From Adineta vaga (Eukaryota; Animalia; Rotifera): 64,000 bases of DNA. Location: assembly GCA_021613535.1 (NCBI GenBank), contig CP075493.1:248001-312000 (forward strand), written 5' to 3'. Both the position numbers and the translations under genes were made by a program. Shown piece by piece: positions 8,333 through 42,032 of this stretch; position 1 is the first letter of the stretch, and every line of letters starts with the position of its first letter. Below the pieces are notes generated by a model, which saw nothing but the letters and a program-made list of their open reading frames with translations, was not told where the DNA came from and did no database searches.

Positions 8333-8670
8333 CTAAGAAACATTTAAAGCTCAATTATGTACGCATATAAAGCCAATGAATTGTACTTTCGACAGACTCC
8401 AAGTTGATATGAAATCGGTCCTTAAATGTTTCTCACTTTCAAAAGAATCACATTTTTGTAAGATGGGCCTCATAGCGCTCAAAGGGTATGAAAGGATTAA
8501 TATTTGTATGCACCTGTTTATGGACGTTAATGTTCACGACTTAAAAAGCTGTTCATTTGTTATTGCGTTGGAGTTTTGAAGATTCGATACATTCTATTGA
8601 GACGCGAAAAACTTGGAACATAGAGTTGTCTCAAGCCTTCCTATTATAGTTATGAGCATTTTGCGAGGTG

Positions 8671-9110: not shown

Positions 9111-9374
9111 TTCTCTATCAGTCAACTTTTACGATAAAGCATCGTATCAACTTAAGATTGCATTACTTTCTTTTATAGATAAACTAATATCTGACCAATC
9201 TTCAACGAATAATAAATCTCAAAAGTTGATACGAAACTTTCCACTTAAGGAAGAAGGATTATCCATTTATATTTCCAACGAATGGGTGATTGCACAACTT
9301 CGAAAACCATTTCTGTTCCAATCAGTATTAGCTTAAATAAACTTGCTTTTAAAGTGGCAAGGTATAACCAAACC

Positions 9375-9566
9375 ACGGGTAGAACACTGTCGAGGCACTA
9401 GTGTTGGTGGAACTAAGGCTCCTGCACTAACATTAATCAAAAACGGGTAGAACACTGTCGAGGCACTAGTGTTGGTGGAACTAAGGCTCCTGCACTAACA
9501 TTAATCAAAAACGGGTAGAACACTGTCGAGGCACTAGTGTTGGTGGAACTAAGGCTCCTGCACTAA
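9375..9566. repeat. Perfect tandem repeat, 68-bp unit x 2.8
   Basis: Units start at 9375, 9443 and 9511 and are identical by eye. Confidence 0.95.
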
Positions 9567-12500
9567 TAGCGTCTAAACAATTGAACAGAACAGTTTGGTT
9601 TTCGATTTGTGCTTTCCATGGCTATCAGCGAACAAAAACATAGCAACTGATTAACATGGTTTGAAGATACAATTCAAACGGCAGTCAACTCCATTCCAAT
9701 ACCGACTAAAACAAGGTAAACCAGCATTTCAAGATATTCTAATATAATATTCAGAAGGAAAAACGTGGATGCTACTCTTAAATAGTCGACTAGAAATTGT
9801 GTATAATGCAGTAGAACGTTGTAGTTTATTGCATCTTGTTCTAATATACTCCACATTCATGAAATAACAAGAAGAATAAGAATGAATACGCTGTCTTTAC
9901 GAGATACGTTCTTTGGAGCAAGGAACGGACTTGCAGCAGGCCGTTTTGTAAAGTATTGATATTATGTCATATACGAGAATATGGTTAAAGGATGGCTCTC
10001 CATAAAGATATGTTCAACCATATCTGTTAGATTACGTTATAATATGGCAACAGTATTTATAATTAGAACTTGTACCTAAGAATTTTATTTGTCGCTTGGA
10101 ATCAGCTGGTGCCATATTTGTGTCCTTTTCTGTACGTTAGACCTATCAACATGGTTCTCTAGAGTAACCATACGATGAGGAGGATTTCTTATCACATGGA
10201 GTATGAAAAAGTTTAAATATCTAACTTTTTCATCTCTGTACTCATGTGCAGGTAAGTAAAAGTGCACCTTGGTATGGACACAGGCATACTTAACCTCTTA
10301 TTCTTTGAGATTTCGAGCTGATGAAATGCTCCAACATGTAATGCACAATTGTTCATTTGTCGATATTTCTATCCTTTCATAAGTTGAATCTCCACACTAA
10401 AGTGAATAATAAAAACTGCTGGAAAACATATACATGTATAAAAGGAACTGGAAAATTAACATCTCACTCTACACATAATCATGCATCTAATCACTCTGAC
10501 CTTTCTAGACTTTTACTATTCTTATTTGCAGTAGTAATCATAATATTTAAGCAACATCATAAAATTTGAAGTATTTTCTTCTATCTTGTTGCACGCGTAT
10601 TCTAGAAGAATCTTTCCATGTAACCACAATAAGAAGAAAAAGCACAAAAGTTTCCTTACACCAACCCGCGAATTTCGTGAAGGTTCTTCGGATTTCCTTT
10701 CGACAAAGCCAATAGTGATTCGTTTTGCATAAAAACGCTTTAAATTGTTGTACAGATCAGAATAATTTTATATAATCCGCAATATAAAGTCGAATCTTCG
10801 TTAGCCTTTTAATGACGATGTTGTCCACCAATGGCGCATACTCGATTTTCCGAACGTTAGTCAGCAATAAAAATAAAATGCTTTTGGAACATGTCTTCGC
10901 GTAACAGATTTTTCGCAGATATTTACACTCATCTTTTTCATGAAAGAGTAGGCATGAAAATGCGCTAATTAAAAATGATTAATGCAACGTATGAAATCCG
11001 TTTCGTAAATCTCTTTGCAAACTTTTCAAAATCACATCGCCTTGAAAGGGTTAAATAAACTGTGTGCTCTCAGTTACCTAGATTACCTTTTATTGGATAG
11101 TTCAGAAAACAATAAATTGTTTGGTCTGATTGTTTTATACTCTTGAAATTCCGATACTTCAACAGAAAGATGGATATAATATCCAACCTGAATTCTCTGT
11201 ATAAACAGAACGATTTCTAACCATATGACATTAGTCATACAATGTAGAGACAGAATTCTAATAAGTAAAGAATTTTGTTTGGGGGCCATATGCGTCCCAT
11301 TTCAATCCTAACAGAACAGTTTGGTGTGCCCATTTGGTATGAAAAAAGGTCCGTTTATCCACATCCTTACCCTAATTATATTTATTCACACAGATAATAG
11401 AATGAACTTTACCATAACATGTTTTCTAGGGTAGTTATAAAGCAATTCATCTGTGACTGCCATTGCTCAATGTACCGTATCAATCAAACCTGTTTCTGCA
11501 AATAAATTAGACTACTAGTCTGACATTATTTCAAATATTACGCACGCTGTCCGCATAGACTAATGAACGCAACATATTTAATGCTTCATACACTTGTCTC
11601 ATTACATCATCTGATAATACATATGGAAACATACCTATCGACAATCACGATATTTAAAAGAAATCAAAAGCATACACAACATCCATATGGAAAGGGCATA
11701 CATTCTACAGTTGATGCCATGAAGATTGCAAGAAACAAACATATAAACTCACATATAGAACATGTCTCTAGGTTTTTTTTTATGTATGTGTAATAGTAAA
11801 TTCGAATGAGTGCGATTGTGAGGAATAAAGATAAATAGACGTGTGGGTGTGGATGAATGTCAGAAAACAGATCGAGAATGAATATTTTAAGGTAAGTGCA
11901 AGGAGAGGAGCCGTCGGGATTTATTTTTTTAGGATTTATTCTCTACAGAGTGTTTATTTATTCCACAAGGATTTATTTGCACTTATTAGCTGCATCAGCA
12001 TTTCAGCGCACCCTCACCATTAATTCTACTCTTCGTCCTCACACGATACATGGGATTTAATAAAAAATTGCAATAAATTCCCAAAAAATAAGTCCCATTA
12101 ACTGTTCGAGAAAATATTGCTTTTCTTTTTTTCCCAAATCGGCCAGACATTGGACGCAAGTACTTAGAAGTACTTGCGTCCAATGTCTGAAATCGGTCAT
12201 GTCTATGGTATCTTTCAAAATTCATGACATCCAGGAATTCGCTCTTTTCTATCCGTTCCTATGTACCTACGAGTAACGCTCATCGTGCCGACTCACCTTA
12301 CCGTCGACTGTGGAAGACAGGTTCTTTTCTGCGTGTGCCAATAGTGAGAAAAACTGATCTAGCAACTTTATAAACGAAGAAACGATTCAAAAAATTTTCT
12401 CACCCACCCGAAGCTGTATCATTCACTTTCACACATTTACACCTACATCCATAACTTCGTCCAACACTCATCTCTCTACCACCACCCATGTTCATACTGC

Positions 12501-12580
12501 TACCAACGCTTTCACCCAACACCCATCTTTCTACCTCCACCCATGTTTATACCCCGACCCACACCCTCATACTCCATCGA

Positions 12581-13975
12581 CACTGTAGAGAGAAAGGAGT
12601 TTTACCGAACCAAAAGATGTTTCGGGTAAAACCTTACTAGAAAATTTCAGAACAGAGGTTTCATAGCAAAGGTTAAGTACGAAACTTTTTGTCTTCATTA
12701 GAAAGAACGTTCCGTACAATAGGTACCGTATAGAACCTTCGCAATCCATCTAAAAAATAGGTTTCGTATTAATCCATAGCTACGAATTCTTCTCTGCATT
12801 GATCTTCCTTTTGGTTAAGTGAAAGACCTCTTTTATAACGATCATAGTACCGGTTCCGTATACAGACACTTCAGAATACATCCGTCAAATGTTTTCGTTT
12901 AAGGGCACCTCGTATCTTCGCTAAAGCTGATAAGTTTTTGGCATCTGGGTAGATGTTGGTCATTCTAGTAACGCCATTGATATTATATTCTAAACAGTCT
13001 AGAATGCAGGATGTACTTTATAATATATCATCACTTACCTGATTGCCTGTCGGACTATTGAAAAGTGGACGTCTGCCGATATTAATACTCGTATCTTTCA
13101 CTGAGCTCTGCCCGTTTGTTAAGTGAATCAGTGGTAGCTGTGAGACGTTCGGTAGAAAGTTCACTGAACTCTAACAATCTTCACCACGTCAGTAATCGTT
13201 TCGTAGAACTTACACCGAACCCCTTACAAGTATAGGAATCGAGGGGGAAAAGAGAGACTTCCATATTTCAGTACTTCCACTGTGCTTCTGCATACTTCCA
13301 TCGTACTTCTATTATACTTTCGCGATACTTTGTCATATTTCTATGATACTTCCACGATACTTCGAAGTACGGAAGTCTCGCTTTTCCCCCCTTGATAGAA
13401 ATACATTCATATATTTCAATAAATTCTACGAAACCTTGAGCCACTATATGAAATCATTGATAGTTTCGTAAAAACTTTGCTAAGCCTCTAGCCATTGCAC
13501 GAAATTGATAATCGTTTCGCAATAGGTATACTGAACCAGTTACAAGTATGCGGAAATCACCATAGTTTAGGACAAGTGTTTTCAAACCTTCGGCTAATGT
13601 ACACAGTCAGTGACAGTTAGGCAAAAATTCTGCCAAACCTTGCGCGACGATATGAAACCATTGACAATTTTGTATAAACTTTACCGAACCATGAGTGAGT
13701 TTACGAAACCTTGAACTGTTTCGCAAGAAATTTGTCCAACCCTGCTCTACAATACGAAACCATTAATGGTTCCGCAGAAGCTATACCGAACCTTCAGAGA
13801 CACAATCTGGTGATAAAAAGTTTCGCATGAACTATACTGAACCTTTTGAAAGGGAAATGATCTATCATTGAATCCGTAGGAGATTACTGCACCATCACGA
13901 CTTTAGTAGTGAACATGCTGAACTTCTAGCGAATTTTCGAAACTTTTAAAGATTCGTATATGTTATACGAAGCAG
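12581..13975 (+). mobile_element. CACTG-terminated (EnSpm/CMC-like) non-autonomous element, copy A (left part)
   Basis: Starts CACTGTAG...TTTTACCGAAC, the inverse of the terminus at 63954. Colinear with 54530-55750 and 63272-63440. Many CGAAACC/TACCGAAC motifs. Confidence 0.7.
13240..13394. mobile_element. P-element-like MITE, 155 bp
   Basis: TIRs CGAGGGGGAAAAGAGAGACTTCC / GGAAGTCTCGCTTTTCCCCCCTTG; flanks ATAGGAAT/ATAGAAAT; absent from the paralogous site near 55145. Confidence 0.85.
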
Positions 13976-16189: not shown

Positions 16190-19100
16190 CAGTGACTGGA
16201 TACTAGGTACAGTACCTTGTACTTTTTGTACTTTTTACTCAAAAAGTTTGTGTACTTAGTACATTTTTCTAGTATATGGACTTATAACAAGTATTTATAC
16301 TTTGTACTAAATACTCATACTTAAGTACAATTACTTTAGTACAATGTACTTTAGTACTGGTACTACAGTACATGTGTACTGAGTACGGTACTTAGTACTT
16401 CGTAGAAGTACATTTCGTTAATCTTTTGATTTTTCATAATTTTTTAAAATCCATTCATGCGATAGAATTGCAAAATCTTTTAGAGCATTATATAAGAAGG
16501 AAAAGAAATATCAGAGAGAAGAACCAAATTTTTTATTAGTATGAGAAATCAACAGTCAACAAATATCCTCTTTATAAAACAAAAAATAACAACAATTAAC
16601 TAAAATAAAATATAAAACAATAGAAGAACAATTCATCAAAAGAACGAACAAAGCATAATTGCTTTATAATAAAATCTTATTGACGCGTAAAAAAACAAGA
16701 TCTCGAAATAGCTGTTCGTTCATGTTGGTTCTTCGTGGAGACAAAATAAATCCTGCACATGAAAATACACGTTCAATTGGTGCGGATGACGCTTGAACTG
16801 AAAAAATTTTCATTACTAAATTTTTGAGTACCTTCAGTTGTGAATAAGACCAATAGAGAGAAAATTTCGCTCGTAATGGATCATTAAGATAAGCATCTAA
16901 TTCAATAGCTGGATCAAGTGTTTTCAATTCATTTGAGTTATTAATACTATTTCCATAATCAAATAATTTTCGTCGTTTGACTTTTGGAGAAGAATCATCA
17001 AGTGCTGTTGCTGAAGCTTTAATTGTATTGAATTTCACTTTCGATTGAAGTATATCTTTATTAATCTCATTAATAATCAAACCAAGTATACTTTCTTTTA
17101 AACGAGTTTCGGCTTGTGCAGATAATCTTAGATCTTGTATCCAATAAAATCGAAACGACGGATCCAAAACTGCTGCAATAAAATATAATGGATTACCAAA
17201 ATTCTTATAATCATCAACATCAACTAAATTCAATCGATTAATAATACCAGAAAATCTTTTATTAAGTGAGTTTTCAAGTTCTTGAACTAATTTTTTACAA
17301 AATGATAAATGATTTTTAACATCTCGTAAATGAACAAGTAAATGCACAATTGATGGAACAACTAAACTAGCGGTAACCATTTCTTCTGCTTGACATTTCA
17401 ATGTAATTTCCAAAAATGGTTCAAGAATTTCAATAAATTCTTGTAACACAATAAAATCATTATTGGAGAAGCGAATAGGATTATCCATTGTGGATGCAAT
17501 TAATTCTAAATCATCTTTGCCAACAGATAATACTGATTTAATTAATAAAAATTCACTGTTCCAGCGCGTTGCATTCATTCGATTTAAACGTTTATCTAAA
17601 TCATCAAGTAAATCAGCAATTTTAGACGACTTATGGGACGCCTTGGAAAATGCTTGACATTTACTTAATAGTTTTGGAATATATGAGGAATTTCTTAAAC
17701 CATCACGAACAGATAATTGCAGTGTATGCAAAAAAACAAGATAAACGCATGTTTAATGAATTATCATCATCATCATAATTGTTGCCAAGTTGAACATCAA
17801 CAAATGATAAATCACTAAGCTCTACATCAGCTGAAAGAAAAGAAAAATGAATAAGTTTTTTGAGATTTGATAAGGAAAAGAAAAGTTTAAATGCTACCGA
17901 GCAAGTATTCGAAAACACCGCAGAATAACTTTCAAACCGTCATAGTAGATATCGATTTTTTCCCGCTTCTGTTTATATATGCATATTAATTTCTAATTCA
18001 AATAGTGTCTATATGATCAGCACATGAGCCTATTCATTTCTAAGAAATATTAAGTTTAAATTCACCTACTGCTAAAGCGTTTTTTAGAAACATAGCTTAA
18101 TTATATGTTAATGAAAACCAACTCCCTCATCTCACTACTTCAATCTTTTGTCATTAACTGTCACCAATAGTATTATAGACAGACTTTACGTACCATTAGC
18201 ATCAATCGATGTATAATTTGAGTCCGATTCAGATTCAAATTGGTCTGTTTCAGCATCTTCGCCCACCACCAATCCAAATTTATAAGCTTTAATCATCGTG
18301 GATGCATTATCGGTGACAATTTTGTATACCTTGTCTTTGATATTATAACGGTCAAGAATTTCTTCAGTAACTTAATAAATTTTGTCAGCTGTATGTGGAG
18401 ATTTAATTCGAACAAAATCAACTAAATAAGCTTGTGGTTCAGCTTTAGAATCAATAAAATGACAAGTAATGCCAATGTACGATCTGCATTTTCTATCACT
18501 CCATCCATCAACAGTTAATGTAACATAATCAACATTATTTAATGTTTCATGAAGAGTTTTATACACCTTTTCCTTGAAAAATTTAATATTTTCCGATTTC
18601 AATCTTTTCGAAGGAATTGGTTGCCATTTAATGTTACACTCATTCATAAAATCTCTAAAAGCATTATTTTCAACTATACCTAATGGTAAATTACAGTTGA
18701 TAATTAAATTTTTGGCAATAGACATGTTGATACGTTTTTGTTTCATTTTGTTTAGTGATGAATTTGTAGTAGAAAGATCAGTTGGTACATCAACATTTTC
18801 TTCAAATAAATCATTATCACCATTATTCATAGATGTTTTATATTCTTTTTTCATGTTTTCTCTTTAAATGTTTTAAAAAATTACTATAAACACCATTGTT
18901 GTCTTTGTAATCCCTTTCACACTTGAAGCAATAACCATTCAAACGACCATCAGACGTAGTTGAGAATTTAAAATATTTTTTCCAACTATCATTTTTGACC
19001 ATAATGTACCAATACAAAAGAAAGGAATCTAGTTCGATCTGAAATAAAAAGAGACTATTGTTAAAGTTCATGCGCATACATTGTTTTCTTAGTAAAGAGA

Positions 19101-23000: not shown

Positions 23001-26000
23001 TCGGGCGGAAAATCCAAAGCTTGAGAAAGTTTATCTTAGAGGTGATAATGCAGGTTGCTACCACGGTTCTGAATTCTTATTAGCAATCAAAAAAATATAT
23101 CTTGAAACAGGTGTTTTAATACGACGTATTGATTTTTCAGAAGCACAGTCAGGTATGAAAAGATATTCAATTGCAGTGGTAAAAATAAAACAAACTGAGC
23201 ACTAATCTAATTGTTCCTAATGAAAATTAAAAAAGTGCGTGCTTGAGAACGAACCTGAATACCATTAATGAATATCATAATGACATTGAGTATACCTGCT
23301 TTCTATGAAAGAACTTCAACTAGATTTATGTTACATGCATGATGAGTCGAGTGTTCTATTGCAATATTTGACTGATAACTATTGAAATTTTGAGGATAAG
23401 TTCTCGCTAAATATGTTTTCGCTGTTATATAGTATTCATTACAGTTTCGCTAATTTCTTCTTCAGATACTTATTAGTCAGGAAAACTAAAAAAATAGTCA
23501 TATCTTTAGATTTTCTTTAAACTTGTCAAAATTCTTAGAATTAAAGTAGGAACACTTAGATTTTTGCAAGAAACTAATTTGATGCTCAATGATGAATGTT
23601 TTCTGTACTCAAGATTCTTTTTATTTTATAGGAAAAGGTCCGTGCGACCGTAAAGCTGCAGTAACCAAGGGAGAAGTACGACGACATGTAAACGAAAAAA
23701 ACGATTGCTGCAATAGTAGTCAATTTGTTACTGCAGCCAAGTCTACTCAACATCTTTCATTATTTGCCTGTCATGTCACTGATGTAAATAAGAAAAAAGT
23801 TACTCTGCCAAATATCACTAAATACAATAATATTGAATTTCAAGTTTCACCTGTTACTCATACAAAAAGTTCAACATCAATTAACAATCAAAGTCAATTA
23901 GAAATTTCAATGACAGCTTGGAGAGCATTTCAAGTTGGTGTTGGAAAAAAAGTTAAATATTCTAATCTAAAATCAACAGTCAATAGTATTGAAAAACTTG
24001 AAATTTTATCAGAACATTCAAGCAACAGTTGGAAACTGCAAAAAAAGAGCAAAGTTAGTATTCTATCATTGGAACACATACTTTTTTTAAAGAAAATTTC
24101 TATTTGAATATTTTTTCTCTACTCAATCGATCCACATTTTTTCGCTCACAAAGAGATCACATCCGCGTTAGATAAGTCAAGCTAACAAATTAAATATGGT
24201 TATCTTCAGCACTTTGAAATGTCAGAGGTAGTGCGAGTTCTATTATGTCTGACAACTTTGAATTGATCAAACATGTATGAAGAAAACTGATACATTATTA
24301 TAAGATTAGTAAAACGTTTACTTACAAATTTATCAGATCAAAGATATTACGACTAGCTTTTCCATTTGAAGATAGTTTATCAGTAGCTAATAGAATATTC
24401 ATTTATTGATATTCATTTGCTATTGATTTGATATTTTTAGGTGATGTCAATGATGATGAAGAAGAAAATGTTAACAACAGCACATCATTGGAGGAGAATG
24501 AGATGGAAGTTGGTGAACTTTCTTTGCAACCTCGTTTGTTACCTTCTGGTTTTTATCTATTTGACTGTACTCATCCAAAATGTGTAAAACAATTTCGACG
24601 ATATTATAATCTTGAAAAAGATCTGTCAATTGGAAAACACGTTTTTATGCCAACAACAGTTCCATTACTTGATCGAGCTAAGTTACTTTACAAGGAACTT
24701 ATTGACAACGACAATAATCGTGTATCAGTTTCTCTGAATCAATTCAATAATATTATATCAACAACTATATCATCACTCGAAACCATACGTTCACAAGGAT
24801 GGGCATTACCACACAAAAAACCACCTACACACTATAATAGTGATGTAGTTAATTTCTTAGAGAGTGCATTTAATGAAGGTGTGATCACCGGTAATAAATG
24901 GGATCCTGCTACATTATCCCAGGTAGGTTATGGACAAATCAGATCAGAATGAACAATAAGAATCTCCACATCTGAGATATAGATACTAAACCTGTAAGAT
25001 CACTTATTTTATTCCAACTTTTCATTAAAATTTATTTGAGTGTATATAACGAAAGCAACTTTAGATAACTTCATATTGATGAAAAACAAATGCAGACTTT
25101 CTTAATGATAATTAAGCGACGCATATTTCTAATTTTTGAATACGGAAACGATATTGTATTATTAGAACAGGGATTGATCGAAACTTTATATCGAAGAATC
25201 CTTGTAATTGTCTAAGATAAAATATGTGATAAACAAACTTTTTCAAGCAGCATACTGCTCAATTTATCTGATAAATAATGATCTTTACTTGCACAGATTT
25301 CTTTTTGGCATATCATTCAAATAATAGCTTCCTTCGTCTTGATCGTTTAATTTTGAACGAAAAACAAGCAATTGCAGCATTTTCAGATCATAATAAATAT
25401 TAATGTTTAATTCTGTTAATAAAGATTCTATTATCTAAAGAATATATTCTGAGAAAAATTCTATTTTATCGGATGCTTTGCTTGGTTATATGCTTCAAAA
25501 GTGCTTTACTTCCTATATAATCGACAAAAGAAGTAGATTCAAAGTTTCTCGATAGGTGCAATTGATATTATTTGTCATCATCACACTTTATAAAAAAAAC
25601 TATAGACTATTAGAAGTGAATGCTGTTTAAGGAAAAACTAAAGAATGCTTCTAACAAGCATATACCTACACCCCATACAAATTCTATGTCTATTATGTGA
25701 ATAATTTTTTACTTATTTTAGGAAATGATATTTGCTGAATTAAATGGACAACCACGTTCCAATGAAAATGATTTCTTATCTCCTGAACAAATCAAAACAT
25801 ATTTTTCCAAACTAAAAGCAAAACGAAGTAAAGAAGGTAGTCAATCACAATCATCAACACAAATTCCAAGTAGCTCCAACAATAGTGTAATTGATAAAAA
25901 TACAAAGAACAACGAAATGATAGTCGACGATGACGATTTAGATAAACAAGAAATTTCAGATGAACAAATCAATGATTTTGATTCCGCAATGGAAGTCATA

Positions 26001-26060
26001 CAATATGAATATCTGCGTTCGATGGCCGAAAACATTTTTCAATCTGAAAGTAATCTGTAA
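20040..26060 (+). pseudogene. Multi-exon Sola3-like DDD transposase, inactivated
   Basis: Exon blocks near 20789-20968, 21021-21325, 21380-21569, 22110-22323, 22758-23152, 23632-24053, 24441-24922 and 25722-26060. Motifs IDWAMKW...YRESQSEWFGKKG, GDNAGCYH, DFSEAQSG|KGPCDR and a C-terminal CxxxxC. In-frame TAG near 22294 and frameshifts. Confidence 0.75.
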
Positions 26061-27639
26061 TACAAAAAAAACGTTGTTTTTTTTCGTTTGGTGTAAAAAT
26101 AAATATTCCTCTGCTACGAAAAACTATACTAGTCACAGAGATTTACACTGAAATATCTATCCTTTAGAATTCGCAAAACTTCTAATATTATTTTAATACA
26201 TATACAGATCAAAGATTATTATTTTTAGATCAAGAATGCATAGATATAGACATTTCAATATATCAATAATACATTATTTCTCGACAGATATATGCGCTTA
26301 GAATGTTTTTAAGGCAAGTTTTCTGAACAGTTATTGTATATTATTCATTTCACAATTTCGGTTTCATATTTAGGTCTGTCATTCTATTTGAAGAATATAA
26401 ACTATTCCCAATTCTTTTTTTACAAAAATAAAATTCAGATTCATATTCATATTCTTCTTTGCCTTCACAATAGTCGTTTCTCTTTTGATGTCTTATACCG
26501 ACTGCACAAATAATAAGAATATGTATCCCTAAGAAGAGTGTTGGTTATAATTCAGGTTATTATTTTTGTGACCTCGGCAGGTTCTCTAAAGCCTATGATG
26601 TCTGCAAATATTGGAGTATTATGTGTCATAGATTAACAACTACTGAATGTTGAAAACCCGATCTCGATATCTGGTACCATTCCTTAGTTATAATTAAAAC
26701 AGTAAGTCTGTACATCACATATGTAAGAATGATAGGTTCTTGAGGGTGATAACATCAAATTCTAATGAAAAATCATTAAATAACAACTTTTTTGATCGAG
26801 TTTTATATTTTAAACATGAATTTAAATCTATTTGTAAAATATATTGAAAGAGATTCTGCCATTTTTATCAATAAAATTAATTGTTGACATGTATACTTGA
26901 ATTCAGTATGGTCTACGTTCCGATGCCTTCCTATTGTTTAAGACTCATACTATCTTATACCAAAATGTTCGTTAGAACAAGCTCCATCTGTGGGGGAAAA
27001 ATCAGAATGCGATCACCTACCCAGCGGGAGAAAAATCCAAAATAGTGCTAAAAATGAAGGTAATTTTTGTCACATTTCCGTCACTTTTGGACTTATAGCG
27101 CCTTTAAAATTATGAACTATTATTATTCAAATAGCATCAATTTGTCGCTTAACATGCATTCAATCGAATGCAACGTCCCCGAGCTCAAACGGTCAACCGG
27201 TTTTTGAAATAATCCAAAAATACTGAAATACTCTCAAAATAGCAATTTTCAATAGCTAGAAATAGCCTCAAAAACTTGTGTTAACCACAGTTTTTTATAG
27301 GAAGGACCTAGAAGTCTAATATTTTGAACGTTTCTATAGTCCTATGAGACCTTTCGTTTTAGAAGATAAAATCGGGAAAAAAAATTTCCGCGGCGACGTT
27401 GGGGCCCCTTATGGCGGACTCTCTCTTAAGTGATAAAAAGATGAATTAAGAAAAATGAGATTTTACATTCTTGTAGAAAAAATGATCATTTCACAACTTC
27501 GAAAACTAGTCACATAGAGTTTTACTTTCTTCGAAAACAAAATATATACAATTAAAATAAGATTTGTTGTCAAACTTGTAGAGCTTTACAAGGTGCATCT
27601 TGTGGTATATCCTGTTTTTTAGTAAAACACATTTGGAGA

Positions 27640-27695
27640 TTAAAATATGAAATGCAAAGTATGAGCCACCGGTGGCTCACATCGCAATGAAAGGG
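27640..27695. mobile_element. piggyBac-like terminus
   Basis: ...GAGCCACCGGTGGCTCACATCGCAATGAAAGGG|TTAA, with a subterminal palindrome; partner end not found. Confidence 0.6.
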
Positions 27696-27699
27696 TTAA

Positions 27700-28105
27700 C
27701 ATAACCGTTCTCTCTAATAAATGCAATGAAAACTTTCATTCAGAAATTTCACATCATAGGAATTGGTATCAAAGGTTTTCAAGTGACATCAATATTTGTT
27801 CCCAATAACTCAATAGCAACATTGTTGATGATCACATCTAATTGACTACCGTGTTTTTCTTTTATTTGTTTAGTAATCTGAGCAATACTGTCTGCTGCTG
27901 ATGCATCCAATTCAAGAAGGTGCATGTTGGATGGGGATCCCAATTGAACAAGAGTATCTTGTCCTCGCTTTAAATCTCGACAGCCTAAAAGAATCGTATT
28001 TATTGTTTGTTCTGGTTGTTTCATAAGTTTCTTGACAACTTTGAAACCAATGCCTCTATTAGCGCCAGTGACTAGAATAACAAGTTCTTGTTTGACTACC
28101 ATCAT
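27700..28105 (-). pseudogene. Short-chain dehydrogenase/carbonyl reductase-like pseudogene
   Basis: VTGANRGIG Rossmann motif, LGCRD..RG and LDVIINN. Similarity continues past the TGA at 27779 (KTFDTN...IRENG) up to the TTAA/piggyBac junction. The catalytic YxxxK half is missing. Confidence 0.8.
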
Positions 28106-28795
28106 AATCAGCGAAGATGACTAGGAAGTAAATAAAAACGCTGTCATTATAACGATTGTTCCAGTAGAAATGTTCTTCTCAGTATTTTAACCGTAACTTT
28201 TTCACTTTTTATGATAGTATGCTAAATTTTTTTAAAGATGCTACATGAAATTCTCTACAAATCCACCTAGTCAGTTTTTCCATTTCCATGTCCAGTGAAT
28301 TTTTAGGACATGAAAAGTATAGCCTTCCAAAAAGTCGTACTTTCTAAAGTAACTTTACTGAATAATCACTAAAACCCTGTACTACACTCCAAAACCAGAT
28401 TTTGACTCCGACGCCGACGGATTTGCACTGGGCATTGAAAATAAAAATTTCGGAGTAAAAATCAGATTTCGGAATGACAAAATTTGAGTTCGCAGGGCCC
28501 TACAACTGCAGAATCAGGAATCGTCAATTTCCTGCCATGCACGACGGGATATTTATCGACGGCAGATGTGACACTTTCAAGCTTATTCCGATATAGATGT
28601 GCTATCGTTTTCTCACACATGAAATTTTCTATTTGAATATTTTCTAATCAGCATCGGGTACCCGCGCTAGTACGAAATAAAAAAAAGAAAGAAAGAGAGT
28701 CATTGAAGTAAAACGAAAGAGAAAAAAAAGAATCTGCTTTTGTCGATTCATTTCATTATTATTGTTAGCATTACATACGCTGTTTTTCTCATTTC

Positions 28796-29329
28796 ATGGA
28801 TCGAAATTTATCCGCTGATTTATTTTCTACAGATGATGACTTAAAGCCTCTTCTTGGCAAACATTGGATTCATCAATGTCTTGATGATGAACTATATGAA
28901 GTCTATGTGAAAAATAGAAATACTATTGACTTTCGTACTCTTACAGGAGTAGTAGCTGGAAGATGGTTCAAAGGACAACATGCGAACATAGTACGACTTT
29001 CATCAAAGGCTAATTTATTTAACATTTCATGGTACGAAGCCACCGGCGCATGTGCTAGCTTAATCATAAATTTAGACGAACGTATCATTAAGTTAAATGT
29101 GTTTTTTCCTCGATGGATAATGAACGATCCCGACAAAACAATAGGCTTCGAAAATGAACATGTCGATGAGATACTTCGACAGCGCGATGCAGGACCAACT
29201 TATCCCTTAGGAAGTCTTCACGAATTCGCAAAACTGAAATTTATAGAAGATTGTGGTGAAAACAACGAAACTGTCATTGCATGTCATCCAAAGGATTTAC
29301 CTGATGGTTATTTAGATCGTTCTAATTAA
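28796..29329 (+). CDS. padC: Phenolic acid decarboxylase (PadC/PAD family) homologue, intronless
   Basis: Full-length match by eye: YEVYVKN..TIDFR, VAGRW, SWYEATG, FFPRWI, RDAGPTYP, EFA....DCGENNETVIAC. AATAAA at 29386. Confidence 0.92.
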   Translation: MDRNLSADLFSTDDDLKPLLGKHWIHQCLDDELYEVYVKNRNTIDFRTLTGVVAGRWFKGQHANIVRLSSKANLFNISWYEATGACASLIINLDERIIKLNVFFPRWIMNDPDKTIGFENEHVDEILRQRDAGPTYPLGSLHEFAKLKFIEDCGENNETVIACHPKDLPDGYLDRSN

Positions 29330-30399
29330 TTATTTACAAAACTGTTTTTATTGTCTGCGTCTCACTCTTTTTTTCTTTTATTTCCAATAAAACTCAATAC
29401 TGAGTAAGATGTAAGTTTGTGTGAGAATGTGGATATTTTCATTTGATAAAACCCCCATGCACACCCACATCTACAACCACACTCAAACTCTCAAACTGGC
29501 TCAGCGTAACTGATGGAAAGGATTGATAAGCACAAAATCCGATGATTTTAGAGTCCGATCACCTCAATGACTTCCAACAAGCTCCTATGAATTCTAATTG
29601 ATTTTCATGAATTTTGTGAGAATTTTTACAAAAGCTTATGAATGTCTTTGGATTCTATCTTATTCCATAGCTTCGTTGGATCTGTACACTCACATTGAAT
29701 GGAGGATGAAAGAGTTAGAATGTTCCGGTACTCTCGTTAGAAAAGAACTATCTGTCTATGTCTGTACTTAGAAATTGTTACTGACTACTTATTTCAATCA
29801 TGCTTCGTGACAAACAACATTGACTATTCGGCACTTAGGGTCTCTTGCCCAAGTATTATGAGAAAAAAGTGTGACTTTTTATGAACGAAGACAGAGCATA
29901 TTTGGAGAGGCTAGGTGTGGGTGAAGAGTAAAGTATAACCCACATCCACACCCACACACTCCATATCGAGTTCTCTGTGATCAGTCATTTTTGTCCTGGA
30001 AAAATATAACCCGAGAAAAACGTGATGAATTCCGGATCGAAAATGGTCCTTTGTCGGATGTATAGATCTTCGCACACAAACTTCGTTATGAAGAAAACCT
30101 TGTCATAACTTGAAATGCTGATTATAACCATCTCTTGTTCAACTCTTTTCACTGTTCACATTAGATGTAGGTGAGAGTATCACATAAAGGGTGTTCTGTA
30201 GTAACTGAGGATAAATTGTTAATGAAGTTTTTCGTACTTTCTCTTGATTTAGAGAGGTGAGAGTTTTATCGCTTATATATGGAATGAAAACCTAAATCCT
30301 CAGACAGTTTCAGCTCGCTAGCTAAAATTAGCCGTGAAATAAATCGACAAGATGGGAATACAGATATTACGGTCAAAACATCAATTTTTATTCTGTATT

Positions 30400-30945
30400 G
30401 CAAGGGTAGTTCCATAGATACTCTACCAAAAAAATTAAAAAGTATACAGGAACGTTTCTTTCATATTACACTTTGTGGAGCTTTTTCTCGTAATCATTTT
30501 GGTAGTAAAACTTTTCCAATTTAATTGAGAATTGACTATCTCTTAGTGAAGATATTTATTGTAAAAACTGAATATGTCAAATTGTTTCTTGATAGAAATA
30601 TAATGTATAATGTCGACTCGAAATTTATTTATCGTATTTGATCGTAATTGAGAAGCTATCTATTGGGTTTCATTGAGCAAACTTCACTCTACAAAATCCA
30701 CTGTGTAATATTTCTTCAGAACTTAGCCATTTTGAGATATATGGATCGACTTCTAACTACACGTTAGGTCATTTTATAGTGTTTAGTACTTTATCCAAAA
30801 TCTCGTCATTGCTCGATGAAAGCTGGAAAAATGTTTTTACCAAAATAATCACGAGAAAAGCGCTACAAAGCCTAATATGTAAGAAGATTTTTCTAGAGTT
30901 TGTTGGACTTTTTTGGCTGAATATGCTTGGAATTGTCCCGCAGAA
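30400..30945. mobile_element. Diverged fold-back MITE
   Basis: CATATTACACTTTGTGGAGCTTTTTCTCGTAATCATTTTGGTA vs TACCAAAATAATCACGAGAAAAGCGCTACAAAGCCTAATATG. Confidence 0.55.
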
Positions 30946-32859
30946 TTTTGACTAAAAAGATATTCAAAAATCGTTTAGGAAAATTGAAAAGTTGTTATAT
31001 ATGATTTACAATTTTTAAATTTCAAATTTTACAGGGATTCTCAAAGATTGCTGATGATTTCTGAGGAATCTGGCGGGTTCCAGAATTCCGTTCTTTACTC
31101 CTTCCTCTTGAAAGATTAAGGACAGCTACAAATATAGTGTATGTGTTCACAATACTGCTCATTTTATTAAAGTTTTGTCTTGTGAAAATAAATTATGGAT
31201 TTATCCTTTATGTATAGAATTGAATCCGAATTCAGACCTATCGAAATCATCACTTGAGTTTTGTTCTATCTCCTATCATTGCAATGAAATAGATTTTACT
31301 ATAAAAACCAAAAATTTTTAAATGGTGGTCGAAAAATGAGATTTTGCTCAAAGCTTTCCTATCGGAAAATAGATCAAAACCGTAACAGTTTTATGCTAAA
31401 GTGTTCGTCTTAACATGCGTATTTTACTAGTATATCGCTCATATATGAGTAGTAGGAAAAATATGAATGGGGTGATTCTGAGTTTTATTCACCCCTGTCT
31501 TTTGTGACGACTCAGTTTGCAAGTTTTATCCAACCAAAACTGAACTTACTTGAGAGGGACATAATAGAACGGAGGTTTCAATTATTCGTTATGATTAATG
31601 TGTAGATATTTCGAGCAAAAGAGAGAAAGACGGTGTAGGTGTTCGGAATCCGTTCAACGTGTCTAGTTTTTATGTCTATAAACTTTTTTTTAGATTTTGC
31701 ATAGTTTATAAGACTCGCTCTCCCTATTATTATAGCTAGTTAGATTGTTTTCGCGTCGAAATCATTCTCCACCAGCTGGTTATCGCAACGTTGTGATCAT
31801 ATAGTTTCGTCTGATCTATATTTTTCAAGGCTATCCAACTTTTTATCAAATGCAGAGAGATTCATTCTCTTTAACTTACTATTACGATTATCTGAGACTA
31901 GCAAAGATGCCCAATGTTGTTTTAGAACCTTTCAGATCGAAAATGTCATATGTTGTAAAACGACTGAAACTAGCGGGGGATGTGTTTGGAAGTTTTTATA
32001 TATTATCTCACCATATCTTGCCCTGTATATGGGAGACAGGACAACGAACACCATGTAGCCCTTTAAATTCAACTATTCTCGTATATATCTTAATGCAACA
32101 ATCTTTCCTTCTCTTACAGCTCTCGCTGCAAAACCTATCCCTTCTCTTACAAATTTCAATTTAACTTTATCTGCACTTCAATTCGAACGTCAGAAACCGT
32201 AAATTCCGAGGAAAGTAACTCATTTCTCGCCAGTACACTCACGTTCGCAATAAAGTGTAATAGTCTAGCAGACATGTTGTGAGAATGAGTGTCTCGCTTC
32301 TCACTCACTCTAATTTCCGTGTCAGCCTTGCACATATGCGCAGAAACATGGTATTAGATGAACACTGTAAAAGTCGATAGTAATTAGTTAACCGAAATCA
32401 GATGGAATTTTATCAAGGGGAAAAAAAGCGAAAAGTCGATACTCCGGTGTACTCCTTGTACTCCCGGGGTGGGTGTGGGTGTGTTTGAGGGTGTGAGTAT
32501 GGGTGTTGGTAAAACTCCTCTCTCAACCCACACTCTCACCCACCCACACTCTCAAGACACTTCATCGACAGGATACTTCGACGACTAAACGCTCTAACAC
32601 CAAAGTCGAGAAAATTCAACAAACGATCAAAAATATTAAATTCGTTTTTGTAGAAACTTTTCTTTAAAGAACATAAATATCAAACAATAGGTTTTAAACC
32701 CCCCCCCCCGCTTATAATAGAAGCTCCCTGGGGCTTCTAATATGAGGGGGGGGGTTACTCCAACTTGGAATAAATCTATCATTGAAGGTGTGGATGTGAG
32801 TATGAAATTGAACACTGATATCAACATATACACTCTCCCTCGCCCAGATGTTTTGTGGA

Positions 32860-36223: not shown

Positions 36224-36876
36224 GGTAGATGTATATTCAAAATACCAGCTTACCACATGAGTAATAAGCATGAAAAATAACCATTAATAATTTACTATTA
36301 GTCATTATAAGATACTCTTTAAGTCTGGATACTTCTGAATCAGTGTGTATATAAATTGGTTCGAATGTCACCAAGAAAATACACGGTAATATTCCCCTCT
36401 GAACAGCAATTCATTCTCTGAATCTGCTGATGGATCAACCGAGATGATATTCATAGGTTAAAGTCATTTGGAACTCATAGTGGAACAATGAATTAGATGA
36501 TATAACGAAAAAAATAGCTATCATCGTATTCGCCTATAAAGCATTACTTGCTGTCAAAAACAAATTTTCTCCTACATCAACGGCACTTAAAATGTTGCAT
36601 GCCTTCTTTTTATACAAGTTATCACTATTCGAGATTTTTAGTCTTCTAAATTTCCACTGATATTTTGCAAAGGTAAATTCTTATTTTCTTCCAATAGTAT
36701 TGTTCAGATAGGAAACGTAGCTCAAAGACTCTGAATGAGTTTGAGCTTAAAGATCAACTTTTTTCGAAGGTGTATACATATTTCAGTAGATTGCTACAAC
36801 TAGGGTGTATTTTATCACAACTCAATGTTCTAATAAAACTTTAGATTCAATCATCTATAGTTTGCATATTAGCAAG

Positions 36877-39800
36877 ATGACGACGGATTTTAACAAGATA
36901 CCAATCATCGATTTTGGGAGATTTTTGAATGGCAGCCAAGAGGAAAAAAGTGAAGTTGCAAAACAAATTGGCGAAGCTTGCCGTAATGTTGGATTTTTCT
37001 ATTTGAAAAACCACGGGATATCTGCAAAACTAACTGAAGATACCTTAGTACAGGTGGAAAGATATTTCGCACTGCCTTTGGATATGAAAATGAAAGATGC
37101 TGTGACAGGACGATCTAAAGACGATGGTCGCGGATATCAACCATTTCTAGCAGAACAATTTTCAAGTGGAAAGGGAGATCGCAAAGAATCATATTACTTT
37201 GCACTGGAATTGGACGAGGATGATCCAGATGTCAAACGGGGAGGTGCACTCTATGGACCCAATCATTGGCCCGATCTGCCAGGTAAGTACCTATACAGCT
37301 ATACTGAAATTAAAAAACGATTCGTACTATTCTAGGTTTCCGAGAAGTACTTTACGATGACTACTATTTGGCTATGAAAGATTTAGCACAGCAACTTTTG
37401 AAGGCATTTGCATTGGCATTGAACCTATCCGAAAACTATTTTGATTCATTGACAGATAAACCATTAGCTAATATGTCTCTTATGCATTATCCATCACAAT
37501 CATTAGATGGAACACTCGAGCCACATAGTATAGGTAAATATATAATTTATTTTGTCTATTACATAAATGTTCTCGTAGCAGGGAAATTAAAAACTTTTGT
37601 TAGAGCCGATGTAGGGGTGCAACAAACCCAAAGCTTTGGATTTGGTTTGTCGGATTTGGGTTTGGGTTTTATTTGGTTGTCATACGTCTAAAAATCATGT
37701 GACTTTGATATTAGACAAGTTTAAATTCAAAATCCAAATCCAAACCCAAATCCAGATCTACACTAGGATTTGTTGCATCCCTAAGCCGATGAATAGTTTT
37801 CGAGCTTTTAGCTATTAGAGTGATAAGGTTACCATTGTTTATCTTTACAGATGCACTCAGTGTCAGTCAGACCGGGTGCAAAATGAAGTAACTCATAATC
37901 TATTTGCTATCGAGTAATCCTAGGAACTTGCGTTACATTAATGTACTATAATTGTTTTATTTCTGAATATATATATATCCGTTAATAAGAGCAGAGATTT
38001 GACAGGATATTACTTTTTCAGCAGATAATTAGTTCAATAGATAAATATACAGAAGTCACATAATTGTCATGTATAGATAGAGCACAACTTATCAGTAAGT
38101 TAATAGAGTTTGAATTAACTAAATCTATATTCAATGCGACTGTATTGGCACATGTCTACCTACCTTTAACATTGCTTTTTGATCGATATTACCCTCATTC
38201 TTGTGTGTAAGTGATACTGAATATTATACCTCTGAGCACTAGAATTTTCCAAATTCAACTAGTGTTTAACTTTAAACGCTAGGATAGGAGATCAGAAGTC
38301 TTTCCAACTGTATTTAGCTCAATATTTTCGAGAATCATTTAATAAATCCGAATATTTATGTAAATGCTGTGTTCGTGATGTGAAAATTCAAGTGTGAAAA
38401 AGATGTTTTCATTAATTAATGATGCCTATGCTCTAGACAGAGCTAAGAGGAAATTATTTGTACTTGGGTTTTTCAGACTTCTTAAGTATTAAGTACAAGT
38501 ACAAAGTATTCATCAAATTTACTGGTACTTGTGTTCAAGCACAAAACCGGTACTTTTGTACTTTGTACTTGATGTTAGGAAATAGCAATATTATTTTATT
38601 ACTCAAATGCTTTCGGTTTTTCAGAACTTTCGCAGTTTTCCGTGACGTCGTTGTGATCACGTTGAAATTGATTTGTTAACGATTCTCTTATCGGAAATCA
38701 AAACATTATTATAACCATAATTAAAGCTAAATCTTATGCTTTAGAGCTAGAGGGACGGTGGTTGCATAGGTAAGAAAGAGATCGCATTCACATACAACTT
38801 CACAAACGTTTTGAGTCAAACTATATAAGACATCTGAATAATAATCGTTGTTAAAATTTCCTATCCTCGCTGTATATTTTCATTGTTTCTCGAGTACCAA
38901 GTATAAAAGTACAAGTTTTGTACTCAGGTATAAGTACGGAAGTATCTGTTGAAAGTAAAAGTATAAGTACGAGTTCATATTCTCCAATTACAAGTGTGGT
39001 ACTTTTACTCGTCCAAGCTCTGATTCCACTTTTTGTTCTTTTATTGTATTCTAAAATTTGCTAAGCCTGACGTAAGTCAAAATACCTCCTGCTTGTAGTA
39101 CTTGCGGTAATAAACCCAAATGACTCTTCTTGTGAAACATTTCTTACTGGTTTTTAATGAGAAGCTAACAAAACAACGGGATCTATCGAATGAAAATCTA
39201 AAAGAGACGGTGTCTACCCATCCGAGTAATTTACTAAATCAATAACGAATCGATGGTGAACAGTCTGTAAAAGAATTTATTGAATATCATCATGAGAGGT
39301 TCAGTGTCAAAAGAAGGGAAAAAACACGCAGTTCTATTCATTAAAGGTCTACATAGCGGAACATTCTTACAACTCATAATGTGTTTTTCAAGACCCACCG
39401 CTCACTCCATAGTCGATTGTTGACTTATAAATATTTAAATGAACTGACTGTGTGCATATGTTGAAGTCTTGATGGAAAAGCTACGATAAAATTTGCAGCT
39501 CGATATATTGGTATTTGACAGAGATCATCACCAACCAAAAGTCAAATATAACCATTTTCGCACCTATAGTTGTCGATCTCGAATGGTTTCATCTATGAAT
39601 TTTTTTATTGGAGAGAGCATATAAAGATCCAGGAAATTACGTTGTTCTTTTTTTTGCTAACCTCTTTGTTTTAACGTGGATAATTTCATTAGCAAGTTGA
39701 AGCTCTAAAAAACACTCTAAAAAATTGAATAAGTGCTTGCATTTGTGTTTATAAGAAAAACAGACTTACATTTTAAAGTAAATGTGGAAACTTCGGATTT

Positions 39801-42032
39801 TGTCTGACGTGAGAGTTATGTGTACTGCAAAAAGTGTATGATATAGATGCATCATTCTCGAACATCTGAACACTAAAAATATCATAAATTTATTTTTATC
39901 GAAACGATCTCTGTTGACTGTTGCTAATCTGAAAAGATGTAGAAACGAATACAGCTCATTTTTCATCTCTCCGCTTTTATTTACCTTATGACTACCAACT
40001 TTCTTATACGTTAATTCCGATTGGTCACTACTCAACCGATGTAGTTTCGAGGAACACGAACGACAAATTCGAGTTCTCCGACTCAGAAAACTTCGAAGTA
40101 AGATATCTGTCATCGGAAGATAGAGCTTTAATTTTGAATTAACGAGTGCTGCTAATATTAGATTCATTTCTTGTATAGTTATGTTTGCATTTAAGAGACG
40201 TTCCATGGTTCGATCGAGCATTTGTGTCCCACGAAAAAATTTTAACCTACCGTTTTGATTATGCCAAACGAAAGAGCATGTAAAAAGCATCTAAATCCAA
40301 AGTTCCAGCATTTTTTAAGTGACTTACGGCCGATTTCGCAAGTACTTTCTTCAACATGCTCAAATTATAGTTTTACATATTTTCGATTTATTGGGTACTC
40401 AATATTTCATTATTATCTCCTCTAAAAAACATTCAAATTAAACTTAAAAATATGTCAAATGGTAGAGCAGATTGAGTTCTACAAAACTACATATTTAGAA
40501 TTTATTGAAAAAAGTTTCTCACAAACCTAAAAGCCTTAAACTGCCTATAATGATTTAAAAGAACTTGAAATTTTGAGGAGATTTTTAGTATTTTCATGAA
40601 AAAACAGACAGAAAAAACATCAGGTCGACAAAAGTTACAAGTGGACTTGATAGAGCGGAAGAAACTGCACAAGATGCAATGAAAAAAAATTACCTATAAA
40701 ATGCACAAAGTACCCTAACTTACTACAAAAATCCGGAAATATCATGTTTTCTATAGTAGTTTTCCATAGAATTGTCAAAATTTTTCTCTTACACGCAACA
40801 TAATTATGACTTATTCACTCTAAAGCAGATAGAACTTCTAAAGGTTCGTTATTGCAGTACCCCTGGGCGAATATCACTGTGGGTGAGGTAGGATCTGGGT
40901 GAAAACCAGGGTGAGTGGTTTTGGAGATGGGTGAATGTCAATGTGGGTGAAGTGTGGTTGAGCGGTGGGGAGGTGTCAGATAGGTGTAATACTAACACCC
41001 ACACCCATCCTCTATGTCCCTGTGTATTCGGCTAGGGATGTTACATGTATTTGTTAAAGGATTAAGTTAGCATGAACTTTCGCAAAGTCTGCCGCTAAAT
41101 ACCAGTTCCATATATTTTCTCTTTACCCCTGTTGACACTTTACTCTGGTAGAGAATTTCAAGCGCTATCAGAATCTGCCATTGCTTCCTGCTAAAAGTGT
41201 TCTGTTGACCGCAATATCCTCGAAATACATAATCCGGCTTTTGCTTTCCACAGGTATATATGTAGAAATCATTTCATATTCATAAGTATAATGGCATTAT
41301 TTCACTGTTTCTTTATCAAAATGTTCGAAGCATCATCGAATCTAAATAATAATAGATCAATACAATAAAAGGATACACGTATTCTGATAATTATATCTGA
41401 TGAGAAATCGTAACGATTCAGCTAAGATATTGTCACTCAAGATACTTATAGACTTCTGTAAAAGATAATATTTTTTAACCTATTTGCGAGAAGATCAACA
41501 TAAACACTTCCTCGTCAGATTACATTAATTAACGAATAAATCCCAATTATAATATAATTGCTATTCTGCTGTTTTGTTAAACGTAGGATGTCGTGCACAT
41601 ACAGATATTGGGGCGTTCACACTTCTACAACAGTCGAGAGATGTTATAGCGTTACAGGTAAAAAATCATGAAGGACAATGGATCGACGCGGAGCCAATTG
41701 AAGGAACTTTAGTTATTAATATTGGTGATGCAATGCAGCGATGGACAAATGATCAGTTCGTTTCTACAGTGCATCGTGTGATCAATATTGGCGGTGAAGA
41801 TAGATACTCAGTTGCAATGTTTTATGGACCGAACTTTTTTGCAAACATTGATTGTATTCCAACGTGCTACAATGCTGAAACAAATCCAAAAAAGTATGAA
41901 CCAATCCTTGCCGGTGAATTCGTGATGAGTAGAATTGCCGATATGTATACGCCAAAGTTTGAAGATATCGATATTGGAAGACTACCCAATACATCAAAGA
42001 GTGATACCATCAAAAACAAACATACATCATAA
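36877..42032 (+). CDS. 2-oxoglutarate/Fe(II) oxygenase, isopenicillin N synthase-like; exons 36877-37282, 37336-37533, 41587-42032 (349 aa)
   Basis: IPIIDF...ACRNVGFFYLKNHGI N-domain, HTD...H iron triad and RYS 2OG-binding motif. Both introns are GT-AG, phase 1, and the frame stays open. Confidence 0.92.
37612..37783. mobile_element. hAT MITE, 172 bp, in intron 2 of the oxygenase
   Basis: TAGGGGTGCAACAAA / TTTGTTGCATCCCTA with a perfect 8-bp TSD AGCCGATG. Confidence 0.92.
38438..39022. mobile_element. Non-autonomous hAT remnant
   Basis: CAGAGCT ... AGCTCTG ends with AAGTAC repeats; a similar terminus occurs at 13986; no TSD. Confidence 0.6.

Follow-up and report, generated by a model that had tools for sequence, protein, structure and literature searches.

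We describe here a gene at positions 28796-29329 of the forward strand of a 64,000-nucleotide stretch of Adineta vaga chromosome 1 (hereafter the window; G000:C1:248001-312000), which encodes a protein of the phenolic acid decarboxylase (PAD) family carrying His-Gln-Cys in place of the Tyr-x-Tyr pair of the active site, and which we call the HQC type. In our judgement there is about an even chance that the HQC type is a neofunctionalised paralogue, in bdelloids, of a PAD gene of non-animal origin, that is, an enzyme with a changed substrate and possibly a changed reaction. The gene had first been pointed out in a note made from the letters of this DNA (the original prediction), which read it as a horizontally acquired PAD homologue with a remodelled active site. 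The observation was confirmed and the interpretation borne out in part. None of the computational tests that could have refuted that interpretation did so, but it had missed three points which are central here, namely the canonical paralogue in the same genome, the duplication of the HQC gene itself and the probable remodelling after duplication.

Bdelloid rotifers are a standard example of an animal that has taken up foreign genes on a large scale and, to our knowledge, few of the acquired genes have been followed beyond the statement that they are foreign and expressed. The HQC clade is new within a known enzyme family, while horizontal transfer in bdelloids is already well established; our literature search found no paper linking PAD to rotifers. 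A canonical and a remodelled sister PAD in one genome would make a natural before-and-after pair for the re-tooling of an imported enzyme inside an animal, of which the HQC type is a testable case. PADs are also in wide use as biocatalysts, and their Tyr pair is regarded as invariant; a naturally selected scaffold in which the Glu and Arg are kept while the phenolate anchor is swapped for His and Cys could reveal new substrate scope or chemistry.

Family, fold and active site of the HQC-type protein

The open reading frame (ORF) at 28796-29329 (+) runs intact from ATG to TAA, contains no intron and encodes 177 amino acids. It matched PF05870 (PA_decarbox) with an E value of 3.9e-50 and 170 bits, against a cut-off of 24.6, over profile positions 2-156 of 158; an NCBIfam scan of the protein returned no family at E<=1. 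Using HMMER, every solved PAD was matched at the sequence level, the best being the ancestral PADs 8a85, 8adx and 8b30 and the Enterobacter FDC structures 4uu3 and 3nx1 (E 1e-45 to 1e-49), and by homology the protein is a member of the PAD family (PF05870). An AlphaFold2 model built on a 21-sequence alignment reached a mean predicted local distance difference test score (pLDDT) of 92.1 and a predicted template modelling (TM) score of 0.87. When this model was submitted to Foldseek, AncPAD55 (8c66) was matched with a TM score of 0.91 and a root-mean-square deviation of 0.8 Å, and the top 24 PDB matches were all PADs; as modelled, the lipocalin-like beta-barrel fold of the solved PADs is present in the HQC-type protein. 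An AATAAA polyadenylation signal lies at 29386-29391 (+), and transcribed sequence could be followed for about 10 nt beyond it, to 29401, where a contig of run X4 ends. The intact PAD-family ORF and the eukaryotic poly(A) signal claimed in the original prediction were thus borne out by the PF05870 match and by the AATAAA, and the structure prediction that it had proposed as a check yielded a confident PAD-like model.

Compared with the known PADs (B. subtilis PadC, or BsPAD, 2P8G/4ALB; L. plantarum PDC 2W2A; Enterobacter FDC 3NX1/4UU3; ancestral 8A85/8ADX/8B30), the HQC-type protein is alike in profile family, length and single-domain organisation. It is 43-48% identical to Enterobacter FDC and the ancestral PADs, with TM scores of 0.88-0.91 for the fold. 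Unlike them, it carries an 11-residue acidic N-terminal extension, and its gene, which has a eukaryotic poly(A) signal, belongs to an animal chromosome.

In known PADs, Tyr11 and Tyr13 (BsPAD numbering) hydrogen-bond the para-hydroxyl of the substrate and support the quinone-methide intermediate, and Glu64 is the general acid (PMC10176493). The substrate carboxylate contacts Arg41 and is processed with Glu64, Thr66, Thr68 and Tyr31, and the loop between strands beta1 and beta2 forms a lid which opens and closes the active site (PMC10915792). The original prediction had the two Tyr holding the carboxylate, which is the older orientation model; current accounts put them on the para-hydroxyl (PMC10176493, PMC10915792). 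PMC12817654, citing Frank et al., describes the BsPAD Y11F/Y13F double mutant as completely inactive, and it reports docking in which Asn15 also bonds the p-OH.

To place these residues in the HQC type we used HMMER together with a MAFFT alignment of about 100 family sequences, the numbering being anchored on P0015, a close relative of L. plantarum PDC (LpPDC = P0015 minus 1, BsPAD = P0015 minus 8, from HMMER against the solved structures). By both methods, the codons of His26-Gln27-Cys28 (28871-28879, +) take the place of the family Tyr-x-Tyr, so that Tyr11 is replaced by His26 and Tyr13 by Cys28. In both alignments the following codons, Leu29-Asp30-Asp31-Glu32 (28880-28891, +), occupy the beta1-beta2 lid loop in place of x-Asn-Gly-Trp (Asn15-Gly16-Trp17 to Asp30-Asp31-Glu32), and DFRTLT (residues 45-50; 28928-28945, +) stands for DYRIHS, with Tyr31 changed to Phe46 and Ile33 to Thr48. 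Arg56 (28961-28963, +) is the kept equivalent of Arg41, and Glu81-Ala82-Thr83 (29036-29044, +) keeps the equivalents of the general acid Glu64 and of Thr66 with Pro65 replaced by Ala82. Copy a, as we call the gene in the window, further has Leu100 for Gly83 and Glu119 for Gln102, and keeps Tyr19 (Tyr34), Phe87 (Phe104) and Glu126 (Glu143). A change of Thr68 to Ala was seen in the A. vaga HQC sequences only. Set against the known PADs, therefore, the HQC type lacks both phenolate-anchoring tyrosines, the lid Asn-Gly-Trp, Tyr31, Ile33, Pro65, Gly83 and Gln102, and shares with them the equivalents of Arg41, Glu64, Thr66, Tyr19, Phe87 and Glu126. The by-eye alignment of the original prediction (HQC at Y-x-Y, NGW lost, DFRTLT for DYRIHS, Arg56 and Glu81 kept) proved right in every detail, and neither HMMER nor MAFFT showed equivalents of the two Tyr.

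The aligned sequences covering the Tyr-x-Tyr site numbered 72 (69 family members and three HQC sequences), and Y-x-Y was present in 57 of them, H-x-C being confined to the three HQC sequences; Cys at position 13 was found in no other family member aligned. The lid-loop Trp17 was present in 74 of 81 family sequences, and an HQC orthologue from a metagenome reads Gln-Gly-Glu for NGW. The equivalents of Glu81, Arg56 and Thr83 were kept in all three HQC sequences. When we scanned the columns conserved at 70% or more in the family (n=50), nine were replaced in all three HQC sequences (Y11H, Y13C, N15D/Q, W17E, Y31F, I33T, P65A, G83L and Q102E), and the pocket held more than its share of the replaced columns (5 of 11 pocket columns defined from the literature versus 4 of 39 others; Fisher one-sided p=0.017). 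As judged from these alignments, the HQC replacements are concentrated in the lid loop and where the pocket anchors the phenol. The acid/base end, with Arg56, Glu81, Thr83, Tyr34, Phe104 and Glu143, is kept. Given the roles of these residues in known PADs, the HQC protein would have lost the phenolate anchor and the lid Trp and would keep most of the proton-transfer and carboxylate end, the change of Tyr31 to Phe being the exception. In sequence terms, two defining features of a PAD enzyme, the Tyr pair and the lid NGW, are absent from the HQC type, and a third, the general-acid Glu with its partner Arg and the Thr66 equivalent, is present.

Paralogues, origin and constraint

A six-frame search of the whole genome (six contigs, 100.8 Mb) found four PAD places, all on chromosome 1, a contig of 18.1 Mb. 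HQC copy a lies about 0.28 Mb from the chromosome end, and 156 kb away is HQC copy b (C1:432673-433203; hypothetical protein I4U23_000066), whose protein is 97% identical with five amino acid differences. The third is a canonical PAD of 165 amino acids (C1:1243519-1244007; I4U23_000300, locus L003), 47% identical to the HQC type, in which YKYANGW, DYRIHS and WTEPTG are intact and which, on this residue pattern, is likely a true decarboxylase. The fourth, 8 kb from the intact canonical gene, is a canonical-type fragment with stops and frame breaks (C1:1251565-1251783, -; L004/L016), 63% identical to the A. vaga canonical PAD over 73 residues. P0042, from a Logan assembly, looks like a similarly decayed PAD copy. 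The canonical PAD and the HQC type share genome, chromosome arm, the absence of an intron and a two-residue insertion, and are sisters in the best maximum-likelihood (ML) trees; unlike the HQC type, however, the canonical PAD keeps every catalytic and pocket residue, the identity between them is only 47%, and the HQC branch is much longer.

An exhaustive phmmer search of 1.84 billion representatives yielded 131 family clusters, of which the HQC clade was one, the next best match being 47% identical. Neither this search nor two word-index searches found H-x-C outside the HQC clade, and the word-index searches, the second seeded with the metagenomic orthologue P0002, gave no further HQC member. 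HQC peptide patterns had 598 matches in a metagenome contig collection and no relative among them, a blank which means little as the collection evidently lacks P0002's own contig. The second word-index search did recover a group of canonical sequences, P0149-P0153, with 72% identity to the A. vaga canonical PAD; we take this clade as eukaryotic since its members lie on contigs of 31-33% GC beside ubiquitin-domain genes. The two-residue insertion (an 'LSS' motif) lies before beta-strand 5 and is common to this clade, the HQC clade and the A. vaga canonical PAD. For the PADs on two of the contigs, L027 and L028, it is only the tree that speaks for orthology with the A. vaga canonical PAD; the ubiquitin-domain genes next to them were matched by nothing near that gene or within the window. 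L027, a eukaryotic metagenome contig, holds at 953-13151 a unit repeated four times in tandem (3470-bp period, 96% identical) and made up of a canonical PAD, an unknown protein of 227 aa and ubiquitin-domain genes, and on L028 a canonical PAD is flanked by ubiquitin-domain genes.

Two ML trees (LG+C20+F+G4, unrooted, with weak deep nodes) recovered the HQC clade with support of 100/100 and, in the best tree, placed it as sister to the canonical rotifer-type sequences. The HQC stem was 0.46-0.51 long as compared to 0.11-0.23 for its sister, that is, 4-5 times longer. Named relatives were actinobacterial (Amycolatopsis, Streptomyces) or from the liverwort Marchantia paleacea, the nearest relatives being metagenomic sequences, and no donor lineage of the rotifer PAD was identified in the two trees or the family searches. 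Of the horizontal acquisition claimed originally, a non-animal origin fits the family distribution and the trees, but the donor did not emerge; likewise the phylogeny that had been called for did put HQC beside the eukaryotic canonical clade, albeit with weak support and in unrooted trees. The statement that PADs are bacterial and fungal needs correction, as tandem double PADs are annotated in M. paleacea. Proteins with two PAD domains in tandem (342-360 aa) were seen as P0007 and P0140-P0143 in M. paleacea, with several annotated paralogues, and as P0006 and P0136-P0139 in Logan assemblies; the second domain of P0006 and P0007 reads Phe-x-Tyr and not Tyr-x-Tyr. From trees and alignments together, the remodelling was most likely not imported but followed a duplication inside the rotifer lineage, and the simplest reading is one acquisition, a duplication in the rotifer ancestor, a burst of substitution in one copy and then constraint.

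The two HQC copies sit, by nucleotide comparison, in an old collinear duplication. A blastn search aligned window 28674-31891 with C1:432550-436484, the paralogous locus; the shared segment begins 122 bp ahead of the ATG, and further scattered collinear blocks were found between the two loci. The coding sequences (CDS) are 96.4% identical (19 differences in 534 nt); BLAST blocks that take in the CDS and the sequence next to it reach 92-95% identity, and those of the farther flank 84-86%. By Nei-Gojobori estimates, the 14 synonymous and five non-synonymous differences between the copies give a ratio of non-synonymous to synonymous substitution rates (dN/dS) of 0.087, with a synonymous excess of binomial p=1.2e-6. 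Comparison of the HQC copies with P0002, a 64%-identical HQC protein from the JGI metagenome contig L018, gave dN/dS of 0.20-0.23 at dS of about 1. P0002 reads His-Gln-Cys, Glu at Trp17, DFRT, E-A-T, Leu100 and Glu119. L018 has 36% GC, with a GC content at third codon positions (GC3) of 0.26; no frame of its 517-nt upstream flank holds an ORF, and the nucleotide similarity of the contig to the window reaches past the CDS by about 40 nt on the 5' and about 30 nt on the 3' side, which fits an orthologue in another bdelloid-like eukaryote. These substitution ratios indicate that purifying selection acts on the HQC gene, as seen when the A. vaga copies are compared with each other and with the 64%-identical orthologue, and that the gene is not decaying; the dN/dS test set out beforehand thus gave 0.087-0.23 and not a value near 1.

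For expression, contigs of four public runs were placed on window 25801-31600, divided into 30 bins. Runs X1, X4 and X6, from three studies, were labelled RNA by guess, their RNA nature being inferred from gene-only coverage. The DNA-type run X10 covered all 30 bins, and the contigs of X1, X4 and X6 lay only over 28769-29401, showed no joints and ended about 10 nt after the AATAAA. They define a minimum unspliced transcript at 28769-29401 (+) with a 5' untranslated region of at least 27 nt and a 3' untranslated region of about 72 nt, in agreement with the intronless gene of the original prediction. Wherever letters differed in these contigs they equalled the copy-b base, while the contig pieces at 28769-28915 and 29260-29357 showed no differences across sites diagnostic of a versus b, of which 10 lie in 28803-28885 and two in 29290-29314. 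The copy-a-type pieces together with the copy-b letters imply that both HQC copies appear to be transcribed, as unspliced mRNAs. At seven sites in window 29008-29251 the copy-a letters of the reference were found in none of the four runs, all contigs carrying copy-b letters, and in the DNA-type run a 404-nt contig (28886-29289) was about twofold deeper than the sequence on either side. The cultures that were sequenced thus seem to have the same central CDS at both HQC loci, either because one paralogue converted the other or because the reference differs.

Proposed function and alternative explanations

We propose that, after a duplication in the rotifer ancestor, one PAD copy would have passed through a burst of change and then come under constraint. 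Since the barrel and the Glu/Arg proton-transfer machinery are preserved, the HQC protein most likely would still bind a planar aromatic or heteroaromatic acrylic acid, or a vinyl aromatic, in the barrel and continue the Glu81-mediated protonation chemistry with Arg56. The head group would be recognised by His26, Cys28 and Asp30 instead of the Tyr pair, in a pocket deepened by the changes of Tyr to Cys and Trp to Glu and narrowed elsewhere by Gly to Leu, which implies a changed substrate and possibly a changed reaction. Candidate reactions may be the decarboxylation of a substrate with a head group other than 4-hydroxyphenyl, or the hydration or isomerisation of a vinyl group or acrylate. Several points weigh against this proposal. 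Its functional part is drawn from the sequence and the predicted fold. His at position 11 occurs in four other family sequences that keep Tyr13, so that part of the change may be compatible with ordinary PAD activity. The HQC clade is known from three sequences of two lineages, so that its 'fixed' residues rest on a small sampling; the pocket columns of the enrichment test were compiled by us from three papers and the p-value is modest. The sister relation of HQC and the canonical rotifer PAD is weakly supported (63/67 and 72/57). Expression was seen as contigs from runs only guessed to be RNA, and contigs give no level, strand or exact transcript ends.

PADs are homodimers, and a protein that had lost catalysis could act through its fold, the lipocalin-like barrel serving as a binder or carrier of phenolics or hydrophobic ligands, or the subunit as a heterodimer partner regulating the canonical PAD. 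We regard such a pseudoenzyme as possible, if somewhat unlikely. The loss of both catalytic Tyr, whose double mutant in BsPAD is described as inactive in PMC12817654, and of the lid Trp speaks for it, as does the full conservation of the fold and of the long dimer-forming scaffold, and purifying selection is equally expected for a binding protein. However, Glu81, Arg56 and Thr83 are kept across 64%-identical orthologues where a pure binder would have no obvious need of them, and the residues brought in (His, Cys, Asp/Glu) are polar and could take part in catalysis, which sets them apart from mere hydrophobic filler. If the HQC type does prove only to bind ligands and not to catalyse, it would illustrate cleanly the birth of a pseudoenzyme after horizontal transfer. 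An ordinary PAD, that is, a divergent isozyme in which His26 and Cys28 donate hydrogen bonds to the phenolate in place of the Tyr, seems to us unlikely. Both residues are able to donate such bonds, four other family members carry His at position 11 beside Tyr13, and the Glu/Arg/Thr set is intact in an unchanged fold. Yet seven more conserved positions (N15, W17, Y31, I33, P65, G83 and Q102) changed in concert around the same pocket end and lid, Cys13 is found in no other family member, the HQC stem is 4-5 times longer than that of its sister, and a genome which already has a canonical copy has no need for a crippled isozyme.

The weak support for the monophyly of HQC and the canonical rotifer PAD, with no donor lineage identified, would also allow a separate import from an unsampled HQC-type donor, hence two independent transfers, and an assembly or contamination artefact belongs with this reading; we hold both together to be very improbable. 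No H-x-C was found outside rotifer-like sequences among the 1.84e9 representatives, the two-residue insertion is common to the HQC and the eukaryotic canonical clades, and the GC3 of the gene, 0.25 in a window of about 33% GC, matches the host. The locus belongs to an A. vaga chromosome of 18 Mb that also contains hAT and LINE (long interspersed nuclear element) sequences, and a separate DNA run covers it without a break; L018, the contig of the orthologue, has its ORF-free 517-nt flank and similarity at the level of the untranslated regions. The suspicion that the contig might be non-animal or chimeric was in this way dispelled, and the 'animal-like genome' was identified as A. vaga chromosome 1, the protein of copy b being annotated as A. 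vaga. A decaying, functionless duplicate is largely refuted and we give it hardly any credence. Key catalytic residues are lost, and the setting is gene-poor, transposon-rich and subtelomeric with a canonical-type pseudogene elsewhere. On the other hand, the frame is intact in three sequences of two lineages, dN/dS is far from neutral (0.087-0.23), the CDS is better conserved than the flanks between the copies, transcript-like contigs were found in three studies and the predicted model is confident and well packed. The preferred reading thus stays that of a neofunctionalised enzyme. A bolder form of it, which we think quite improbable, has a new catalytic centre in which His26 and Cys28 face Glu81 and Arg56, with chemistry new to the family (thiol-assisted addition or isomerisation, or decarboxylation of, for example, cinnamate, urocanate or aminocinnamate), perhaps downstream of three genes resembling phenylalanine ammonia-lyase (PAL) in a home-built phenylpropanoid-like pathway.

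Chromosomal setting

PAL-like lyases make cinnamate or p-coumarate. Their loci on chromosome 1 (aromatic ammonia-lyases by PF00221, up to 248 bits, multi-exon; L019-L026) are at C1:52325-56442 (+), 234719-245902 (-) and 467202-474759 (-), the second (234.7-245.9 kb) lying 31 kb from HQC copy a and the third (467.2-474.8 kb) 34 kb from HQC copy b. A functional link between PAL and PAD is a hypothesis only and was not used as evidence, as the distances are large and the gene order differs. A simple co-duplicated PAL-PAD module was rejected because PAL lies upstream of copy a and downstream of copy b on the same strands, and the proximity may be just the subtelomeric clustering of foreign genes. 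Separate many-exon PF00221 matches on C3 are probably native histidase-type genes. PMC11258130 relates pathogen-induced foreign genes of bdelloids to phenylpropanoid/shikimate pathways and dioxygenases, and no PAD or ammonia-lyase term was found in its supplements.

Transposon-rich and foreign-gene-rich subtelomeres have been described for bdelloids (PMC3499245, PMC4632278), and the setting of copy a fits them. Integrated in an 18.1-Mb host chromosome with host-like composition and apparently expressed, the HQC gene resembles the foreign metabolic genes of bdelloid subtelomeres (PMC3499245, PMC4632278, PMC11258130) in its probably non-metazoan family, lack of introns, ameliorated composition and position among transposons and foreign-looking genes. 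It differs from the cases in those papers in that the point here is a catalytic site rebuilt after duplication and not the transfer as such. Within the window we noticed a remnant of a hAT-family transposase (dimerisation domain) at 16667-17731 (-) and a LINE ORF of 951 aa with endonuclease and reverse-transcriptase domains at 58829-61681 (-). A 108-aa ORF at 27779-28105 (-), head-to-head with the PAD-like gene and 690 bp from its ATG, encodes the N-terminal half of a short-chain dehydrogenase (SDR) with TGxxxGxG and NNxA motifs. No downstream exon with the catalytic YxxxK and no RNA-type contigs over this ORF were found. It is probably a truncated remnant, and a bidirectional SDR/PAD module was dropped from consideration since the ORF looks truncated and lacks RNA contigs. 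Exons of plant/fungal-type 2-oxoglutarate dioxygenases were observed 7.5-13 kb downstream of copy a, namely a DIOX_N ORF at 36805-37335 (+; E 4e-32) and a 2OG-FeII_Oxy ORF at 41574-42032 (+; E 9e-21), with a weakly similar block near copy b.

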